64,000 nucleotides of DNA, taken from contig OX337231.1 in NCBI GenBank assembly GCA_946965045.2, positions 186,001 through 250,000 on the forward strand, given 5' to 3'. The notes under the pieces are model-generated. The model made no database searches, had not been told where the DNA came from, and saw nothing but the letters and a program-made list of their open reading frames with translations. How positions within the stretch are numbered: the stretch's first letter is position 1; each line of letters starts with the position of its first letter. Below, one piece after another: positions 7,282-56,899 of the stretch. The stretch is from Epithemia pelagica (taxonomy: Eukaryota > Protista > Bacillariophyta). A program made the position numbers and the translations under genes.

Positions 7282-7784
7282 ACGCCGCACGGACGACTTT
7301 ACTTTACACTTCTCTGTAGTACTTTCTAGCAATAGAGTGAGTATTTCTCCGGCCAATCTGCACAGTCAATGTGTTGGGTCTATCGCAACCGATACGAAGG
7401 CAATATTCAGCTCCTGATTCTCCGAAATCTCCGAACCTTTTCAAACACGACCAAGATCAACACATAACAACAAAATCGGGATTACTTATAGGACAAGATA
7501 TGTCACGGAATTCTGTTGGGTAGATGTAGCTCATCTCACGACTGGAAACGAGTACTCCTAGCAGCATACTCCAAAACTAGGCCATTGAATAACTAGGGTT
7601 CATAGGTTTGCGATCTAGAGATGTGTGCAAAATTTCGACCACTTTTCAACCAAAGCAAAAAACACAAGGAATACAAAAAAACAACTTCTTTTACGTACAG
7701 GAAAGTACAACAACAAATCAGCATTCTTTTGGGCAAAAGCGAAATACAGGAGTTTTCTCGCGTGCGAGGAATCTCGGTTGGTGT

Positions 7785-47661: not shown

Positions 47662-48599
47662 CCTCCTGCTGGTGCTGTAGAAGAGAAATAGAGGAACACA
47701 ATATTAATAATAGGGGATGCGTTGTGGTCCGCTGCCAAAGAGGACGGTGAGGAGGAGGTGCTCCCACAGCGAGAGTTCAGCCGTTGATGTCGTCGTAGTC
47801 TCCTTCCAAGATCTTGAGAGACTTCTGAGACTTTTTTGAAGAAACTCTCTGATTCAGAGAATGTGACACCCTTCCATCTGTCGGGACATTCTTCCACGCA
47901 CATGAGTCGCGTTTCAGATGGACAGGCTTCGCTGCACGCGAGGCGACCACTCCAACTCACAAAATGGGCAGCTATCCATACCTTTTCTACAAAGAAAAAC
48001 GAACACGTCGTTCACCACAACGCAAACCGCAGCAAACCGAGACGAAGAGAAAACAAGATTCTCGACATCATCATCCTCCATCGCCTCCCACAAAAGATCT
48101 CTCCCGGTTGCCCCTTGTCCATACACAAAAGCGAGAGAGAGAGACTCGAGACAGAGAGTTTGACGATTCATCCTTTGGTTGTCACTTTTTGGCCGAGAGC
48201 AATACGAGCACTCGTGTATCAATTTCCCTCACATACACGTGCCAAATTTGCTCCATGGCCATGCACACTCGTCCCAAAAATGGCTGGCGCACCCAAATCG
48301 CCTGCCAGTCCCCTTAATTACAAAAACAGACTATTTAACGAAACTCTACAGAGAAACGTCTTTCTCTCGTCATTTTCTGCTCATTTTTCTCATTCGGTAC
48401 CCACCTCCCTCGGAGGCAACATTGGTTTTGGTCCATCAAACCTGCCAATGGGAACAACCATGGCTTGTGAATTTCAATCTACCATTCGGACAACTCACAA
48501 ATAACTTGATACGTTGTCCTCTCAGAGAAAGATTGAAGAAAGAAACAATTAAACAACATACCCGGCCCTGACCTCCATCACCCTGTTTACGTTTGCAAC

Positions 48600-50417
48600 A
48601 TGCAAGACTCTTTTAGAATTGGCTCATTCGTCCATATCCGCCTCCCTAAACAAGACGAAGAGACAACGACCATTGCCCGTTTGGACTACGCGGACGACGG
48701 CGAACTGGCATTGACACTCTTCTTTCCTCTTTTCCCCGACAAGGAGTTGACATGCCACCCGCCTCCCCCGGAACACGCCATCGACCCGATTGTTGATGGC
48801 ATCGGCAAGAACAACGTTGAGTTATACCGTTCTGGGATACAGATCAAACAATTCCCGTCCTTTATCCTGCTTTTGTATTCAACATCGAAGAACTGTCGCA
48901 TCCCCAAAATGCATGGGCCTCCGGAATCCGGAATGCGCAACGTTTACGTTGTTCGTTTCAAACAAAGAAGAATCCAACACGTCCCTAAACTTGTTCCCAT
49001 TCAACCATCGGACGTTCTTTGTTTCCCTACCAACTCTATTGCTCCGGACGACGAGTCCCTTATCATATGCCACAGATGCTATCACAAGAACGTATGGACT
49101 GGCCTATATCTTCTCCGAAAGGCCATTAGCAAAGTCCTAAACAGACGACGCAGAGTTTCAGAGAAGCACCAAGTTGTCCAGACATGTGGAATAGGCCTTA
49201 TTCCTTTGGAGGTATTCAATTACATCCATGTATTGGCCAACTCGTCTGTCAAGTCACTAACTTGTCATTATTGTTCCTCTTCAGAGTCGTATTTGCACAT
49301 TGACGAAAACCTCACTCGTCGCAAACTCAAGTTCGAGTTTGAGCAAGGTGTCATGCGCTTTGTGTCCTGCGACGACCTGGACATTCTCCGCCAGTTCCTC
49401 GGTTTGGGCGGCGTATATGGTTCTCCGGAAACCCGACCTACATTAGCGGAATCGAAACACGGCCATACTCTCAAACGGGGTCACTCATTGACCCTCGTCC
49501 AAGCATCTAAACAAGACGACGAGACACCTTTCAAACGCCGTTCCAAACAGCAACGAGTTGACCTAATGTTCTCTCCAACACAGGTTCGTGTCACAGTTGC
49601 TTATTCGCGTTATACTTTTGATACCTTTCGATCTACTGGACGACTAAAACATGATCCTCCTACTCCTCATCTCCAGGCTATCTTAAGCAAACAAAAATAC
49701 AACGAACGACCCGATACTGTATTCTGTCCCAAGAGGAACTCCTCTCCTGGACATTCCTCATCCTCAGGAGGACCATCAGAAATTTCAGGTGGTCCTGATT
49801 CTCTCGATGCCTCGGACAAGGATAGAAAACCCCCGGCTAACGACGACACGTTCCATAAAATTTTGGAGATGTCTATGAATGACTCTGAAGACGACGAGGA
49901 TGATAGTGTGCATGACCCCCATGTTGCAACCACCATTCCTCCTGATACCTGCTCTGACAAAACAGACAACAACGATTCGAAGGAAGCCCTTGATTACACA
50001 ACCAATCAAAACGAGACTGCTTCACAAGAACTAGTTCTAAGTCCTATTGATGAACACGTGAAGGTTCAGGTCGGGGATACGACCATCTACGTCAGCGACC
50101 AGTTCTATGACCTCAAGTCTGTCTTCGAAGTATCTTTCATCTTGAAGCCGTCTTCGGACAAACGATTCCTTGTACGCGAGAAAACCACTGGTGCTTGGTT
50201 TACGACAACTAAGGCGGCATCGTTTGTATCTCATCGTCCTCGATTTGGACCCAAATACAACCACGAAGGAACCTTACCTGCCGACGCAGGTCCATTCTAC
50301 GTCTGCCAGGTTGTTGCTGGTTCAATGTACCGAAAGGAAATTGATGTGTCCCAACAAACTATCATTATCAAAGAACACTCTGACGAATTCGTTACCAAAC
50401 TACAAGACTTCAACTAG
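48600..50417 (+). CDS. Transposon accessory protein (605 aa); N-terminus possibly BAH-like
   Basis: Open ORF from ATG 48600, inside the TIRs, ending 30 nt from the transposase stop. N-terminus RIGSFVHIR...IARL...LFFP...NNVELYRS resembles the BAH pattern; acidic patch SEDDEDDS. Confidence 0.6.
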   Translation: MQDSFRIGSFVHIRLPKQDEETTTIARLDYADDGELALTLFFPLFPDKELTCHPPPPEHAIDPIVDGIGKNNVELYRSGIQIKQFPSFILLLYSTSKNCRIPKMHGPPESGMRNVYVVRFKQRRIQHVPKLVPIQPSDVLCFPTNSIAPDDESLIICHRCYHKNVWTGLYLLRKAISKVLNRRRRVSEKHQVVQTCGIGLIPLEVFNYIHVLANSSVKSLTCHYCSSSESYLHIDENLTRRKLKFEFEQGVMRFVSCDDLDILRQFLGLGGVYGSPETRPTLAESKHGHTLKRGHSLTLVQASKQDDETPFKRRSKQQRVDLMFSPTQVRVTVAYSRYTFDTFRSTGRLKHDPPTPHLQAILSKQKYNERPDTVFCPKRNSSPGHSSSSGGPSEISGGPDSLDASDKDRKPPANDDTFHKILEMSMNDSEDDEDDSVHDPHVATTIPPDTCSDKTDNNDSKEALDYTTNQNETASQELVLSPIDEHVKVQVGDTTIYVSDQFYDLKSVFEVSFILKPSSDKRFLVREKTTGAWFTTTKAASFVSHRPRFGPKYNHEGTLPADAGPFYVCQVVAGSMYRKEIDVSQQTIIIKEHSDEFVTKLQDFN

Positions 50418-50447
50418 TATTTACCATACCTATATAGTGTCATTGTT

Positions 50448-53400
50448 CTATTCACTCTCGTCGTCACTCATTACGTTGTCATCCTCAGAGTCGGCCTCTT
50501 CTGATCCTTTGTCTGCAAGGCTCGAAGATTCCGATTCCGAATCATCTTGTCTGTTGTACATCTTGTAGGCCAAATTACGAATTGCTTCGTCCAATGATTG
50601 CTCGTATAGGGAGTTCTTGCCTATAGTGTAGTCAAATTGGAGTTCCACTCGTTCGTCCTCAGCTCCCATTGCAACTTCAGATGGACGATCACTTATTAGC
50701 TGTCCAAACTCAATCGTTCCCCCGAGGTTTCTTACCCAATCACGAGTATTCTCTCTCTCTTTGACAGTCAATCCTGTCACTGCGGTACGAATGTCTTCTT
50801 CCGTATATTTGCCCATGAAAATAGTTCTCCGCTGTACCCAACAAGCCATGGGCAGGAGTCTCGATTGCTTACCCCGACCCTTGTTCACCGAGCCACCCCT
50901 TTGAGTCCGATTGAAGAAGTAGGTCTTGAATGCGCTATTAAAGGCTTCCCACCCTTGTTGCGAATGTACGGAAAGGTTTCTCCAATGTTGAAGGTATTCC
51001 AATAAGTGACCCGACCCCATCATGTGCCCATAGTTGGTGATACCATCGGAACCATGCAGGGTTATCCAGTCCCTGAACCAAAGATCGGCGCTACTCTGGA
51101 AATCCCAGATCTTGTCGTCAGAGAAAGGAGTTCTCTTGCGCAACTTGGTCATTGCCTCCGCATAGTGCCCAACAGACTCTGTCCATAGCTCCATCTCTGC
51201 ATCGTTGTCAATACACAGTTCTACGATCCTATGTATCCCAGTCAACAGTGCCCTCACTTGAACGTTGTCTAACTTCAGAATCCCAATCTGCTTCTTGTCG
51301 TCATTGAATGGTACACTGGAAGGATTTGATTCAGTCCCAAGCATCTCTCTGTTCACCCTTTTTTCAATCTCATTCTTTAATGCGTTACAAGCTTGCAGTT
51401 TGCTCGATTTACAAGAGTCGTTCATCCATGACAACGAACCCTTCTTTGCATTGGTGAAGCCGTCCTTGATACACATCGTGAGTATCTTGATACCGAGTCT
51501 TATTTCCATGTGAAGGATGCATGGAACAAGGTCCATCATCATCGCAAGGGCCGACGTGGCATTTGCTTTGCCAAACTTTTTCACGGCTTTGGACGCATCG
51601 TGGTACGTCCATTCCGATACGTGTTGCAAGAAGAGACGAGCCTGTCGTTCGATAAGAGAACCATCGAAAGACAGGTCTCTTAGGGCAAGATCCTCTGTGA
51701 GATATGTCGAATACTTTTTCCTTTCGGCACGAGTCGCTTGACCGATATTGAAGTGGATAGATGTCAGATTCCCTCCCTCATTCTCTCCGTGGGGGAGTCG
51801 CGGGTCACCTTGTACTGGAATGTTGGACTCCTCCCAAATGTTCTCGATCTCTTTTGATATTTCTGGCATATCTCTCTCGAATCTTTTCAATTTGGCTCAA
51901 AGAGACTTGAGATGCTCTGGCGTACACATCTTTATATGCCTGCACTCCCAGTCCGGGATGGTGTCATGGCCCATTGCATAACACCAGTTACAGAAGGTCT
52001 TTTACCTCTGACGTTCTTTTTCTTCTCTTTTCCCATGATACAAACAAGAGGAGTAACGTCATTCCTCGATGACGTTAGAGGATTGCTTTGGTCATTGAAG
52101 TTTATTCCGGCCATCGTGATGGAATGCTTCTTTGATAACGTGGCACCATCAAGAGTTTGGGCCATTAGTAGATTTCGTTCTTTTGCTTCTTCCACGACAT
52201 CACGGGCCATGACAATTTCGCGCGTCATATCAGCCGGTCTGAAATAGAAGCCTTCAGACCCGTCATTGCTGTCTCGTATCATCTTGAATGGGATCTTTAT
52301 ATTGCCAAAGGATTCTATCAGGGCGGCCACCTGTTTGAGTGAGCTTGAACTCGGTATCATTGTGCGTAGGTGTTTTTGGCCGTTGGTTTCACAACGGCGT
52401 AGTATCTCTATTCCTTCGAAATTTAGAACTCCCCCAGCGAGGTCCATCACGCGGAGAAAACGGAAGGGAGTGAACAGATGATTGCGCATGTAGGTCTTGA
52501 ACTGCCGTACAAATTGGTCCTGTAGTTGTCCATCATGGATTTTCGATTCGATCAACATGTCAGCAAGGAGCTGAAAGAATTTGTCTGTTCTTTTACTGTT
52601 CATGGCATGGTTCTCCACGCTTTGCTTGATCACATCCTTGATATACAAAACAATCTCCTTTGCACGTTCGTTGTCAGTACAGGACGGAGGAGGAAGCCGT
52701 CCATATTAAGCAAGATCATCTTTCCTTGCCTTCTCAATAGTACGAATACGATCGTCCTTGGCTCGGATATTGACTTCCAATGCCTTATTGCGACGTTCCT
52801 GTTTTCAAATCTTGTCTTTCATTTCGACGAGGCGTTCCTTGAGTAGATCAATGCGGGCTATGAGAAGATCCTTTTCTCTTTGTGGTGAGAGGGGTAGTCG
52901 AGATATTGAATTGGAGATCCTTTCGAGACGGGGAGAGCGTGAAGGGGATCGTATGGCAGCGTCTGTTGTAGACGTCCGTGAGGTGGTTGTTTGCGACAGT
53001 AGGAACGATGGGGACGTGTCTTTGGTGGGATTGGTTTGTGCGCCATCAGAATTACGACTGCCTTGAACAGGGGAGGCTTCTTGTGCAGTCGAGAATGGGG
53101 TTCTGACAGTTGTAGACGCAGTGTTCAATGAATCAATTTGAGAAGAAGCATCGGTCCGGAAAATTACTGTTTGTTGACGAGCCATCGGAGATGGATTCGT
53201 TCTTACACTAACAGTAGGATTCGTGGATTGTGGACAAGTTGTAGAAGCATCAGTCGTTGCATTGCTTGTCTGAGACGGTCTCGTTTTGTCTTTGTCTTTA
53301 TTGTTGCCAGTGCTGGGAGATTCGGAAGGGTCTTCTTCATCATCCTCCATTGCCGTTGTCAAAATGAGGGCTTGTTTATGGCGATGGGTTTGTTGTATAG

Positions 53401-53986
53401 GTGAAATAGGCCTGCAGATTGTGTTGTCAGTGACATTGTTGCCTTGCGGATAGATTGCTGTTGTAAGAACTGCAGCATTTGCATTGACCATATTGGATGT
53501 GGTGGTGACTCGAGCTTTCTGTCCTCGTGGTTTGATGGTTTTTACTCGGTGAGTTGGATACCCAACACTGGTATGGTGGGACCTGACTGTCCTGTTGACA
53601 TAAATAGAAGGATTGTTCTTTTCATATTCATCCGCATCGAAACAATTGCTGCAGAATTTGAAACCACGGAAAATTTGGTAACGGTAGCTGCCAAAAACAG
53701 AACAAGGTTTGGTTGTGGACTTCTTGAATTCTCTGCAGATTTGGGATATCCTCTCTCGTTCGTCATATGATACAGCCAGAGAGTTGCCTTCTGATGAAAG
53801 TCTCCTAGACCGGGTTTGTTGGTTGGGAGAGGGAGGCTTCTTTTTGATCCGGGCTTGTTCAGCTTCTGGGATGAACTTTTTGGCAAATTTCGGGATGGGT
53901 TGTGACGGAGGTCGGCCTGGCTTCTTCTTGGACCTTGAAGGAGGACGTTTGGGAGAGGCTTTCTTGTTCTTGTTACGGGTCTTCAT
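50448..53986 (-). pseudogene. Decayed RAG1/Transib-like DDE transposase
   Basis: ORFs 53986-52805, 52648-51932 and 51890-50448 form one reading. In-frame stops at 52805-52807, 52706-52708 and 51897-51899; frameshift near 52000. Motifs TLDG, PLVCIMGKE, FCNWC, VPCILHMEIR, LDNVQVRALL and ITNYGHMMGSGH...SQQGWEAFN. Confidence 0.8.
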
Positions 53987-55039
53987 TGTAGATAGATGCT
54001 ATTGTCATGATGGACTGATTGTTCGTTCGAATGCAAAAAGATGAGGCCAGTTTGGGATCGTCCAAAATTCTAAAAAGAGAGATTAAAGTACGATTAATGT
54101 GCGATTGGGGGGTAATGTAGATATTAAGGAACGTATATTTTTTCCCGTTGAAACACGCCGGTCGATGTGCGGATCAGTCGGTGAGCCACAAATTTGGTGA
54201 AATTTTGGGGGGGCCATTTCGAACGTAAAATGCTCGACAAAACAAGATCGACAGGTGTTATTTTCTGTGTGATTTAGATTCTCCATGTTTTAAAATGTCT
54301 AAATGTATCGGACCATAACACTCAACGGCAATCGGTTTGGTCCGGAATGCCGTTGCAAGGGAGATGGTCGGATTTGGCCAAAAATATTTAACAATTTGGG
54401 GTTTGGGGGTTCAGTACAAATTGAGGCTATAGTGATTGTGTCTCTTTCTGAGGGAAATTCTGGTCGCTTTTGAGGGACGTCAGCATGGATTGATACAGCA
54501 GTGCTCGTATTTGAATCTTTGTGACAAGATCTATAGATATACTCCTACTAGAGACAAAAGCTATCTTAGCTACCGTTTGACTAATTCCATTCAAAGAAGT
54601 CAACCCTTGGTCAAAATCAGGTCACGTCAAGTCAGACTTGGGCCGGTGACGTGATCCTTGGGCACACCGACTGTCAAACACTGCTCGGAAATAGAGACAC
54701 GTCGTACCTTCTGTCGTAACAATGTCTCTTTCCGTTTCACAAAAGCGACCAACAATTTTTTACGCGACTTAATCTGCAAAAGCATTCGCTTCAGAGTCGC
54801 TTGAGATGGATTCGACAAGAACACGTCATTCGCAACAACAATGCAAAACAGCATACAAAAAAAGGATTCTCGACATCATCCTCCATCATCAACGTACAAC
54901 AGAAAAAGATCTCATTCTCCCTGCCACCTCTGTGCATAGACAAAAGCAAAAGAGAGCGCAAGAGATTGAGAGAGAAAAGGTCGACAATTATTGGTTTGTT
55001 ACCACAACATTCGTTCGAGCCATTTGCCGCCCGTCCATC

Positions 55040-56899
55040 ATGCCATTCTCCTCTTCTTCCCAGTTGTCATCCTCCTGGATGACCAGCACACTAATGGCCA
55101 CGGCCACCATGGCCGTGGTGGCCACCACTGGGGTGATATGGACCTGGTATTCGTCGTCGTCTTCGTCTCCAAACAATGAGGACAACAAGGACGACATTAC
55201 CACCGCCAAAAAGCTCAAGGGCGTCGTTCCCGCTGGTCTGCCGGCCATGGTCCCCTGGTACTTGTGTTGGCCCTTGGGGGGTCGGTGGATGTGGGAATTT
55301 CTCGCCTTGATTCGGGCCGGCGGTGTCCCCGGTATGGTGCGGCGGCGGCGCTATCAAACGAATCATCACCATTATACCTTTTCGATTCACTGTCTCAATT
55401 TTGTCAGCGCGATACCCAGCACGGTGCCCCGCATTGTCATTTCCCATTACGACGATGTCCAGACCGTCTTTGCCAAGCAACGCAAATTGGAATTGCCCCT
55501 CACCTTTCCGTCGTCCTTGACGCGCATTCATGGACGACACAATTTGCAAGAATTGTCCGGATCCAATCATGCCGTGATGCGCAAACTCTTTTCCAGTCTC
55601 TTGTCGCCCCGGGCCCTCGACGGATTTTTGCCCCACATTCTCGATACCTTTACCCGGTTTTGGCAGCACGTGTACACCGAAACGCAACAACAGAACAACA
55701 ACAAGGACACGACGAACGACAAGACGATTATTTTTCGCAACCACATTCGGCAATTTCAATTTGAATTAATGGCCAAGATCTTGTACGGCATGGATGTGGC
55801 CGAGGAACCCGACTTGGTCCATCGGTTGCAACGCAATTTTGAATTGGAAGATGCCGCCCTCTTTGCTCCCTTGACCTCGGCCACCTTTCGCGACGGCCTG
55901 GCGGCCAGTCAAGAAACGCGAGGCATTTTGTGGCAACGCTTTCAAACCATTTTGCAACAAGCCCAACAGGACCACAACAACAACAACAACAAGAACCAGA
56001 CGAACAAGAAAGCGTCTTCGTCCGACCAGGAATCCTTGCCGCCGATTGGCAATGCCTTTCAAGCCATTGCCCAAGCCGTGGTGGAAAGTGGCAAGGCCAC
56101 GGACGACGAAACCCTGTTGTCGGCCATTCAAGACAATTTGTTGCTCTTGCTGGAAGCGGCGCATGGGACCACCATGTACGTCACCACCACCATTTTGTAT
56201 TACTTGTTTCATCCCAATCATGCTGCCGCCCTCCAACGCGTTCGAAGCGAATGTCAGCACTTGATGGACAAGAACGACAAGACGGTACAGCCAACGGTCA
56301 GTGATCTCAAGGATGGGTTGCCCTTTTGCGACGCTGTCATTCAAGAAGCCCAACGCTTGTGTCCCATTGTTGGCTTGATTGTCTTGTACATGAGTGAGGG
56401 CAAGGTGATTGAACTTCCCAAACGACATTTACCAGCCAACCAGCAAAAGGACAACATGTGGAGGCTCGAGGGTCCCCTGGTACTCAAACTCATGTCGGAT
56501 CATTGGTATCGCGATGAACGGGCCTTTCCCAACGCGGACCAATTTTGTCCGCAACGATGGATGCCATGCAGCAACAAGCACTATCCCGACGATGGCCAGG
56601 ACATGACCGACTGGGCGCCCAGGACCTTTGCTCCCTTTGGCGGTGGAAACCACATTTGTTTGGGCATGCACTTGGCCAAACTCGTCCTCAAGGCCAATAT
56701 GTTGTGCCTGGTACAAGCCCGAGTGCCCAGTCCCAACAATACAGACTCGTCGTTGTGTTCCCTCAAGGTGGTCTACGATCCCCAAAAGGTCTTTGTCCAA
56801 AATGGAGTCTTTCCCCAATTTGAAATCAAGGACGGCATGCCCTGTCAAGTTGTGGCCGACGAAGAAGCATCTAAGGAAGAACCAACCAAAAAATCATAA
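55040..56899 (+). CDS. Cytochrome P450, membrane anchored
   Basis: ATG at 55040 with TM anchor. K-helix EAQR (ExxR), FCPQRW (PERF-like) and heme motif FAPFGGGNHICLG. Confidence 0.92.
   Translation: MPFSSSSQLSSSWMTSTLMATATMAVVATTGVIWTWYSSSSSSPNNEDNKDDITTAKKLKGVVPAGLPAMVPWYLCWPLGGRWMWEFLALIRAGGVPGMVRRRRYQTNHHHYTFSIHCLNFVSAIPSTVPRIVISHYDDVQTVFAKQRKLELPLTFPSSLTRIHGRHNLQELSGSNHAVMRKLFSSLLSPRALDGFLPHILDTFTRFWQHVYTETQQQNNNKDTTNDKTIIFRNHIRQFQFELMAKILYGMDVAEEPDLVHRLQRNFELEDAALFAPLTSATFRDGLAASQETRGILWQRFQTILQQAQQDHNNNNNKNQTNKKASSSDQESLPPIGNAFQAIAQAVVESGKATDDETLLSAIQDNLLLLLEAAHGTTMYVTTTILYYLFHPNHAAALQRVRSECQHLMDKNDKTVQPTVSDLKDGLPFCDAVIQEAQRLCPIVGLIVLYMSEGKVIELPKRHLPANQQKDNMWRLEGPLVLKLMSDHWYRDERAFPNADQFCPQRWMPCSNKHYPDDGQDMTDWAPRTFAPFGGGNHICLGMHLAKLVLKANMLCLVQARVPSPNNTDSSLCSLKVVYDPQKVFVQNGVFPQFEIKDGMPCQVVADEEASKEEPTKKS

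Follow-up and report, generated by a model that had tools for sequence, protein, structure and literature searches.

Positions 48200–54512 of the window (the whole 64,000-nucleotide stretch of DNA analysed here) very probably hold a decayed and non-autonomous copy from a diatom family of cut-and-paste transposons that have two genes, combine a transposase core of RAG1/Transib architecture with a BAH-type partner and represent a new lineage within the CMCT clade. The copy measures 6,313 bp and has two tail-to-tail genes between 24-nt inverted ends. Next to the partner gene, the terminal inverted repeat (48200..48223, plus strand) begins 5'-CAATACGAGCAC; the outermost base of its counterpart on the transposase side (54489..54512, minus strand) is mutated (A for C, read inward). 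The 23-bp repeats recognized in the first-pass annotation (48201-48223 and 54489-54511) are present and match at 21 of 23 positions, but the true start lies one base further out, at 5'-CA. Contigs from other copies begin to match precisely at 48200, and the homology between the window copy and L001 is cut off exactly where the inverted ends stop. The ends are shared by other copies. They are not CGAG, as first proposed, but 5'-CA..TG-3' in all subfamilies: CAA, CAT or CAC is followed by TA and (C/G)GAGC, within inverted repeats of 23–31 nt. Terminal positions 1–5 vary by subfamily, both ends changing in step; in one young copy these positions read AG at one end and TT at the opposite end. The element lies ∼ 290 bp upstream of a P450-like gene.

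As originally described, the two genes are 30 nt apart: the stop codon of a 605-aa plus-strand ORF is separated from that of the minus-strand ORFs by a spacer at 50418..50447. In ProtoRAG, too, inverted repeats enclose a convergent pair of genes, and the ProtoRAG-like geometry claimed for the window was confirmed there and at 12 other loci. Our comparison set consisted of the window copy, 11 further copies from the same diatom assembly and one (L007) from another sample; both genes are found in the same geometry at 12/12 further loci, intact copies being present in the same assembly and every copy carrying both genes. Intact elements are 6.0–6.6 kb in length (3–4 kb in Transib/RAG-type elements), with an intron-less transposase gene of ∼ 1,000–1,270 aa placed tail to tail with a gene of ∼ 460–625 aa. 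Three of them (L006, L008 and L009) are ∼ 99% identical over 6.1–6.3 kb and have open 1,208-aa and 547–556-aa ORFs; the family is apparently still active. It is also large: 3,038 representative proteins matched the transposase at E ≤ 1e-3. The named members, from Seminavis robusta, Fragilaria crotonensis and a Bacillariaceae MAG, together with a host PP1 phosphatase that is 98% identical to its counterpart in Nitzschia sp. Nitz4, bear out the diatom host that had been proposed. The family had also been thought to be undescribed, and we found no description of it in the searched literature.

Insertion appears to duplicate a single base and not, as was initially read, the dinucleotide TA. The window copy is flanked by G at 48199 and G at 54513, and a single identical base flanks 11/11 copies of this assembly (p ∼ 2e-5 even with the observed T-rich flanks, where 12 of 22 bases are T); the second flanking base is never identical in the young copies. 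No empty site was recovered, the flanks of L007 differ (G versus A) and a 1-bp duplication is not mentioned in the literature that we searched. Like the T-rich flanks, these points would suit a blunt insertion that makes no target-site duplication at all, the matching bases being due to target preference or to chance. We consider this improbable, since a symmetric target preference predicts complementary flank bases and the observed ones are identical, and since the youngest full copies match with differing bases (L008 C/C, L009 A/A), in addition to the agreement of all 11 copies. We therefore retain the 1-bp duplication.

The window copy itself is dead and broken, not a working two-gene unit. 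Its minus-strand gene, presented at first as a gene, is a pseudogene, interrupted by three in-frame stops and by a 226-bp deletion private to this copy. The N-terminal region (52808..53986, 393 aa), which has a basic start, a Ser/Thr/Pro-rich stretch and a coiled-coil-like segment and is in one reading frame with the core in L005, ends at a TGA stop (52805..52807, Leu in L005). A second piece (52005..52705), bounded by a TAA stop (52706..52708, Lys in L005), contains the first RNase H strands and, ahead of them, the pre-RNase H region, in which LNFEGIEILR lies at 52397-52426. The deletion, placed at 52003..52004 by DNA alignment, follows and shifts the frame at ∼ 52004; contigs of an undeleted sister copy diverge at 52003 from both sides. 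Beyond it are a short piece (51900..51998) with a CxxC...C.H cluster (FCNWC at 51981-51995), a further TGA stop (51897..51899, Arg in L005) and the C-terminal piece (50448..51896), 91% identical to protein P0001, which comprises the insertion domain, PCILHME, the H-x5-H pair, the catalytic Glu, the C-terminal domain and an acidic tail. All these features are on the minus strand. The partner ORF on the plus strand is affected too: a frameshifted patch at 48851..48925, where 22 bp have been lost and 7 bp gained by comparison with L005 so that the frame is restored, scrambles the residues in columns 110-145 of the protein alignment, and the intact form is present in one contig.

All the motifs quoted in the first-pass annotation exist, and two of them need a different assignment. 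An alignment of 61 sequences (P0002 numbering) shows D72 and D153 to be near-invariant and C174, C177, C195, C198, C211, H355, H519, H525 and E545 to be invariant. This conserved Asp-Asp-Glu triad is represented in the window by the first catalytic Asp codon (TLDG, D72, at 52148..52150) and the catalytic Glu codon (SQQGWEAFN, E545, at 50946..50948), with the invariant His pair H519/H525 in TNYGHMMGSGH (51006..51038). Lost with the 226-bp deletion are the second Asp, which is near-invariant in the family and stands in TNCDMS, and the first CxxC, the invariant PCTKC. PLVCIMGKE therefore does not correspond to D708 of RAG1, as had been assumed, and FCNWC is the second CxxC of the family; the counterpart of C727/C730, with which it had been equated, is probably the lost PCTKC. 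Intact members present these elements in the same succession as RAG1, ProtoRAG RAG1L and HzTransib, namely Asp, Asp, CxxC, His pair and Glu. The invariant CxxC lies 21 residues past the second Asp (19 in RAG1), and the His pair ends 20 residues ahead of the Glu, the same distance as from H942 to E962 in RAG1. By spacing and domain-level alignment, the triad would correspond to D600/D708/E962 of RAG1. The diatom proteins differ from RAG1 in the distance from CxxC to the His pair (342 versus 207 residues), where their insertion holds an extra invariant CxxC...C cluster, and in the pair itself (H-x5-H versus H-x4-H).

An AlphaFold2 model of an intact relative's transposase (pLDDT 89.3, pTM 0.87) resembles RAG1 throughout its core. 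When the PDB was searched with Foldseek, the top 49 matches were all RAG1, BbRAGL or HzTransib (E 3e-9 to 1e-3), so that RAG1 and HzTransib, two of the three references proposed for comparison, rank at the top, and the next was Hermes (E 0.04). VIA-align superposed model residues 1-596 on mouse RAG1 483-1005 and HzTransib 58-473 with Z 18-19 (P element, Z 11; Hermes, Z 7), and the likeness to the RAG1 core, ProtoRAG RAG1L and HzTransib (4WWX, 6XNY, 6B40, 6PQX; Z 17-19) takes in the dimerisation/DNA-binding region, the C-terminal domain and all that lies between. The language-model neighbours of two different members are RAG1 Pfam families. At the level of the predicted fold, these results support the proposed RAG1/Transib-type transposase, with a modelled core of that architecture that includes the DDE triad and C2/H2 zinc site.

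That the family belongs to the Transib/RAG1 clade, as the first-pass annotation went on to claim, is unsupported at the level of sequence or profile. Identity to RAG1/Transib is 10-15% only, with no HMM-level match: at E ≤ 10, nothing was returned when PDB sequences were searched with phmmer and hmmsearch, or by Pfam, RAG1 domain models included. The PDB to our knowledge contains no CACTA, Mirage or Chapaev structure. In an ESM Atlas shape search, CACTA-type Transposase_21 clusters fitted as well (TM 0.52, 437-441 residues aligned) as RAG1 and Transib clusters (TM 0.49-0.51, 388-411 residues), DUF1280 clusters likewise appeared among the neighbours, and in the AlphaFold DB RAG1 was found at rank 21 only, amid many unnamed transposases. 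Since RAG1 is not matched by HMMs and CACTA-type models fit equally well, we place the family in the broad CMCT clade and not in Transib proper.

Transibs are defined by a 5-bp target-site duplication, by 38-bp ends composed of a CAC-initiated heptamer, a 23-bp spacer and an A-rich nonamer, and by significant similarity to Transib transposases or the RAG1 core (Kapitonov and Jurka, 2005; PMC1131882). The diatom elements have a 1-bp duplication, no significant sequence similarity and ends without the heptamer/spacer/nonamer layout; the nonamer is absent from those terminal sequences that were read. The CMCT clade unites CACTA/EnSpm-Mirage-Chapaev-Transib with Plavaka, ESTA and Lanisha (Kojima, 2025; PMC12730594). 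Its lineages have C(2)C and a His pair, H(3-4)H, between the second Asp and the Glu, CA..TG ends and 2-5 bp duplications, and often carry extra genes (PMC12730594). The diatom family shares the DDE with C(2)C and His pair, the CA..TG ends, a short duplication and an extra gene, and departs from these lineages in the length of the duplication (1 bp versus 2-5 bp) and in its His spacing (5 versus 3-4) (PMC12730594).

Could the family be a CMC-type element (EnSpm/CACTA, Mirage, Chapaev, or ESTA, Lanisha or Plavaka) that is no kin of Transib/RAG1, the RAG1 matches merely reflecting the lack of a solved CMC structure? We regard this as a serious possibility, if not a probable one. Two-protein elements are usual in CACTA, and the slightly higher TM of the Transposase_21 clusters and the DUF1280 neighbours point the same way. 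So do the C(2)C, His pair and CA..TG ends common to all CMCT lineages, among which ESTA was tied to RAG1 solely through HHpred profile comparison (PMC12730594). EnSpm/CACTA in particular is similar in overall shape alone: the Pfam Transposase_21 model (PF02992) has no match in 15 members, the termini are not CACTA and there is no 3-bp duplication. For the CMC-type lineages in general, the 1-bp duplication stands against 2-4 bp, and the family-named language-model neighbours are mostly RAG1 families, Transposase_21 being absent. No report of a named CMCT lineage in diatoms was found in the searched literature. We favour a new CMCT lineage that, as far as models can tell, is nearest to RAG1/Transib among solved structures and by language-model features.

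The partner gene (48600..50417, plus strand, 605 aa) is a constant component of these elements. Homologues occupy the same position at all 12 other loci, making 13/13 with the window, and even the most distant element has one: that of L007, an element 25-30% identical, is homologous by hhalign (95.6%). Pairwise identities of transposase and partner are correlated (r 0.94, over 28 non-independent pairs), and partner dN is 0.16-0.72 with dS saturated. By these sequence comparisons we judge the partner to be conserved, under purifying selection and co-diverged with the transposase, and the co-occurrence of the second ORF, on which the first reading had depended, is established at every locus.

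The protein is predicted to consist of an N-terminal BAH-like domain, a middle domain of unknown fold, a disordered acidic linker and a small C-terminal beta-barrel. Its model is mediocre (pLDDT 67.6, pTM 0.39). Foldseek nevertheless retrieved BAHCC1, polybromo and EBS (E 4e-4 to 1e-3), and independently, for model residues 11-180, the top 18 VIA-wide matches were all BAH (Z 5.8-8.8). The language-model neighbours are BAH as well, at a weak score of 0.73, and the Pfam BAH model did not match the partner. The C-terminal barrel (residues 500-624) has a weak Tudor/SH3-like resemblance. The structural model thus gives the partner a BAH-type N-terminal fold, and conservation and fold together make the partner a likely chromatin-binding protein. 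The second gene had been called non-RAG2; in agreement with this, the fold searches returned BAH and Tudor/SH3-like domains only, and neither a Kelch propeller nor a PHD finger.

BAH and Tudor-like folds are histone or nucleosome readers, which raises the question of whether the partner is a captured host chromatin gene that serves to escape or exploit silencing, or to steer the element to safe chromatin without contacting the transposase, and is not a cofactor of transposition. Transposons of the CMCT clade and others are documented to have captured chromatin-modifying genes, and fungal transposons that took up TET/JBP genes have been proposed to escape or exploit silencing by means of them (PMC12730594). 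A word-based search gave nine partner homologues against thousands for the transposase, two counts that are not comparable because the searches were of unequal sensitivity. We consider such a capture rather unlikely: the partner is present at all 13 loci, the most distant included, and it has diverged in parallel with the transposase until as little as 21-28% identity is left, which suggests that it was acquired a single time, long ago, and is strictly required.

We prefer to see in the partner an accessory subunit that would tie or steer the transposase to chromatin, a functional analogue of RAG2 and not a homologue. The PHD finger of RAG2 binds H3K4me3. Both partners are encoded convergently with a RAG1-fold enzyme and have a module of the histone-tail-reader type, which in RAG2 is accompanied by a Kelch propeller. 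The diatom protein has a BAH domain and a Tudor/SH3-like barrel in place of the propeller and PHD finger, and the lack of a propeller also sets it apart from the partner in ProtoRAG. As there is no relation in sequence or fold between the diatom partner and RAG2, any common role would be convergent. In the mechanism that we propose, the transposase would bind the inverted ends, use its RNase H-type site for cleavage at the CA/TG boundaries and join the ends to target DNA with a one-base stagger; the window copy could at best be mobilised in trans by intact relatives.

More tentatively still, and with more doubt than confidence, we speculate that this is a superfamily-level diatom lineage of the RAG1 fold, an obligate two-subunit recombinase with a chromatin-reading partner (BAH and Tudor-like barrel) that converged on RAG1/RAG2 outside animals and uses a one-base stagger unreported for any cut-and-paste superfamily. 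The interest of RAG1-fold transposases lies in V(D)J recombination, which is descended from one of them. A large diatom family extends the known range of the fold and adds a branch that could help to root Transib/RAG1 relative to CACTA-Mirage-Chapaev. The 1-bp duplication, if reproducible, would represent a novel geometry of integration, and for diatom genetics the near-identical copies in which neither gene is interrupted could be tried out as a tool. The family would offer a second, independent case of a RAG1-fold enzyme travelling with a chromatin-reader, which makes the reason for such recruitment testable.

The window element is a repeated mobile element with exact limits. As the first-pass annotation had claimed, it is closed by inverted repeats (48201-48223 and 54489-54511), which match at 21 of 23 positions. 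The arms enclose the plus-strand ORF of the partner, the second gene of the element (48600-50417, 605 aa), and three minus-strand ORFs of 480, 238 and 393 aa; the ends of the plus- and minus-strand reading frames are 30 nt apart. All the peptide motifs quoted in that annotation were found in place, among them TLDG (Asp at 52148-52150, minus strand) and SQQGWEAFN (Glu at 50946-50948, minus strand). The 480-aa piece matched eight relatives, whose contigs led to copies in one assembly (ENA ERZ21939226). DNA similarity to one related locus, L001 (∼ 70%), runs from window position 54511 to 48200 and ends there, and in sister-copy contigs from public runs of the organism the match begins exactly at 48200. 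The expectation that other copies share the termini is borne out by L001 and a second locus, L005, which are closed by the same terminal sequence as the window copy. An ORF of 697 aa that bears a heme-binding signature of cytochrome P450 (FGGGNHICLG; 54806-56899, plus strand) starts ∼ 290 bp past the transposase-side end, so the element is inserted in the upstream region of this ORF.

Thirteen loci were covered: the window, L001-L006 and L008-L012, plus L007 from a different sample. In 13/13 a long gene is followed by a tail-to-tail second gene, as predicted for a two-gene unit. L006 (5407-11484), L008 (3407-9686) and L009 (3407-9695) are ∼ 99% identical over 6.1-6.3 kb, and in each of them both genes are open (1,208 aa and 547-556 aa); the family has thus been active recently. 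In L006 a truncation at the 3′ end or a rearrangement has removed the final ∼ 200 bp, right inverted repeat included. L007 is an 8,121-bp contig (ENA ERZ27250636) with an element of 5,961 bp, and several metagenome contigs of its distant subfamily, including those clustering with the transposase-family protein P0078, are close to this length (5,991-6,098 bp). Such contigs could come from assemblies broken at the repeat; excised or circular forms are a further possibility. Close to two of the copies, at L003 1-888 and L005 18269-20984, lie further mobile elements, namely a Helitron-like gene (Helitron_like_N, DUF6570) and a Copia-type pol (RVT_2, Pol_BBD).

The terminal sequence is CAATACGAGCAC in the window copy, L001 and L005, CATTAGGAGCC in L002, CAATAGGAGCAC in L003, CAATACGAGCC in L004, CAATAGGAGCAT in L010, CACTACGAGCC in L011 and CAATAGGAGCC in L012; L008 and L009 have CATAGGCAGCAC / CATAAGGAGCAC and L007 has CACTTCGAGCAT / CACAACGAGCAT. 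Terminal positions 1-5 vary by subfamily, yet both ends of each copy agree (CAATA, CATTA), so these positions are part of the element rather than target sequence. The TA duplication proposed earlier does not survive this comparison: L008 and L009, which are young and 99% identical, have AG at positions 4-5 of one end and TT at those of the opposite end, which rules out a 2-bp duplication there. The first impression of a 2-bp TT duplication at L007 was rejected, as it is contradicted by the same young copies. Just outside the CA..TG ends, the left base equals the right base in 11/11 copies of the assembly (G, T, T, C, T, A, C, A, T, T, T), for which the chance is ∼ 2e-5 even at the T-rich composition of the flanks; L007 is the exception (G versus A), and the second base out does not match between sides. 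This match is an apparent 1-bp target-site duplication, of which there is no mention in the literature searched. The empty site of the window copy is predicted to read GGCCGAGAG then directly AATCTTTG. It was not recovered from the three genomic runs with contigs of the region; these contain the window copy together with a sister copy, with no joint across the element. No RNA run turned up. At the partner-side ends of the window copy, L002, L003 and L005 the inverted repeat is followed by a conserved sub-terminal box, CAAT T(T/C)(C/G)GCTCAC, which is present at both ends of L002 and absent from the transposase side of window-type elements. A binding site that sets one end apart from the other is a possible role for the box.

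The window copy itself is dead. At the DNA level it shares 91.7% identity with L005, whose transposase gene (one frame, about 1,272 codons, a single stop) served as the reference. Relative to L005, the window transposase has in-frame stops at 52805-52807, 52706-52708 and 51897-51899 and a 226-bp deletion at about 52004, through which the stretch with TNCDMS and PCTKC in intact relatives has gone. Only this copy carries the deletion, since contigs of the undeleted sister copy depart from it at 52003 on either side. In the partner ORF, which stays open, ∼ 25 residues are scrambled by a deletion of 22 bp and an insertion of 7 bp.

A profile of the transposase family retrieved 3,038 matches at E ≤ 1e-3, 450 of them at E ≤ 1e-30, from 1.84 billion representative proteins, and Pfam domains were detected in 0/15 members scanned. 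Among the members that bear a name, the sources are two diatoms, Seminavis robusta and Fragilaria crotonensis, and a Bacillariaceae MAG, and the host phosphatase gene adjoining L002 is 98% identical to its counterpart in Nitzschia sp. Nitz4; the assignment to diatoms is therefore correct. In a 61-sequence alignment (numbered on P0002, a family protein from a relative) C174, C177, C195, C198, C211, H355, N516, H519, H525, G543 and E545 are invariant, and D72 and D153 are kept in at least 90% of the sequences. These conserved residues give an Asp-Asp-Glu triad together with zinc ligands. The second Asp precedes the CxxC by 21 residues and the Glu follows the end of the His pair by 20, compared with 19 (D708 to C727) and 20 (H942 to E962) in RAG1 by the numbering given in the first-pass annotation. 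Two of the motif pairings made in the first-pass annotation have to be revised. PLVCIMGKE cannot correspond to the D708 region because D708 sits 19 residues before C727; the equivalent Asp has been lost from the window copy. FCNWC, which had been paired with C727/C730, is the family's second CxxC and has no counterpart in the RAG1 numbering. It belongs to a second invariant Cys cluster, located after the first CxxC and made up of a CxxC with C.H ∼ 13 residues on (P0002 195-213 in the family alignment; window 51936-51995), that probably forms an extra zinc site without equivalent in RAG1 residue numbering. Near the N-terminus of the transposase, a basic start is followed by a conserved Cys-containing stretch, CSVFGSY...FKFCSNCF (window 53700-53800, minus strand; L005 about 7350-7480), which may be a small zinc-binding DNA-recognition module.

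An AlphaFold2 model of P0002 with the 61-sequence alignment (pLDDT 89.3, pTM 0.87) has a RAG1-type fold. RAG1, amphioxus RAGL and HzTransib account for every one of its first 49 Foldseek matches in the PDB (E 3e-9 to 1e-3, ∼ 680 aligned columns); the 50th is Hermes (E 0.04). VIA-align of model residues 1-596 gave Z 18-19 against mouse RAG1 483-1005, 18.7 against HzTransib 58-473 and 17.4 against BbRAGL, followed by the P element (11), ISCth4 (8) and Hermes (7). RAG1 domain families predominate among the language-model neighbours with a named family, both for P0002 and, independently, for P0012, another family protein. The fold half of the claim of a RAG1/Transib transposase thus stands; membership of that clade does not follow. 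Searches of Pfam and PDB sequences with the window ORFs, intact relatives and profiles built from 11 and 61 sequences returned coiled-coil noise only, and RAG1 was reached by no sequence or profile search. The PDB holds no CACTA, Mirage or Chapaev transposase, Transposase_21 (CACTA type) clusters fit equally well in the ESM Atlas (TM 0.52, versus 0.51 for Transib-like and 0.49 for RAG1), and in the AlphaFold DB RAG1 ranks 21 among many unnamed eukaryotic transposases of similar score. For these reasons we withhold membership of the Transib/RAG1 clade. A CMC-type lineage, which the Transposase_21 fit would suit, is one of the two main alternative readings, which we hold only tentatively. The wider CACTA/EnSpm-Mirage-Chapaev-Transib (CMCT) grouping rests on common C(2)C and His-pair motifs, CA..TG ends and 2-5 bp duplications, and one of its lineages was linked to RAG1 solely via HHpred (PMC12730594); the diatom family agrees with this clade in architecture and termini. 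Lanisha was set aside, as it is a lineage of mosses and not of diatoms. The features that define Transib, duplications of 5 bp and an end built of CAC heptamer, spacer and nonamer (PMC1131882), are both absent from the diatom family. The window element is a dead copy from a diatom lineage of two-gene transposons with a RAG1 fold (CMCT clade) that had not been described and, by the defining features of each, belongs to neither Transib nor ProtoRAG.

The partner is a constant, co-diverging protein of BAH type. Its homologues align over ∼ 370 N-terminal and ∼ 120 C-terminal residues at 34-91% identity, and that of the distant L007 is still recognized (hhalign 95.6%, E 1e-8). Pairwise identities of partner and transposase correlate with r 0.94 (28 non-independent pairs). 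For both genes dN is 0.16-0.72 between subfamilies, and no dN/dS ratio is given since dS is saturated in every pair. In a moderate AlphaFold2 model (pLDDT 67.6), residues 11-180 resemble the BAH domains of BAHCC1, polybromo, EBS, DNMT1 and ORC1 (Foldseek, E from 4e-4), and BAH domains made up all top 18 matches in a Foldseek-independent search (Z 5.8-8.8). The C-terminal domain (residues 500-624) is weakly like Tudor, KOW and SH3-like barrels (Z 4-5.4); a whole-model shape search of the ESM Atlas was uninformative (TM ≤ 0.21). The partner was rightly called non-RAG2, as the propeller is absent and a BAH-type N-terminal domain is found instead. A captured chromatin gene that serves silencing escape or targeting, and not catalysis, would share this BAH-type domain and would have to be kept in all 13 loci while diverging in step with the transposase; we hold it, as the other main alternative, only tentatively.

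We favour a partner that takes part in transposition. In RAG and Transib, hairpins form on the flanking DNA during excision. In the diatom family, DDE cleavage would occur at the CA/TG boundaries and integration would proceed with a one-base stagger. The partner would serve as an accessory subunit and connect the transposase with chromatin, in a role that may be analogous to that of RAG2 and would have evolved separately.
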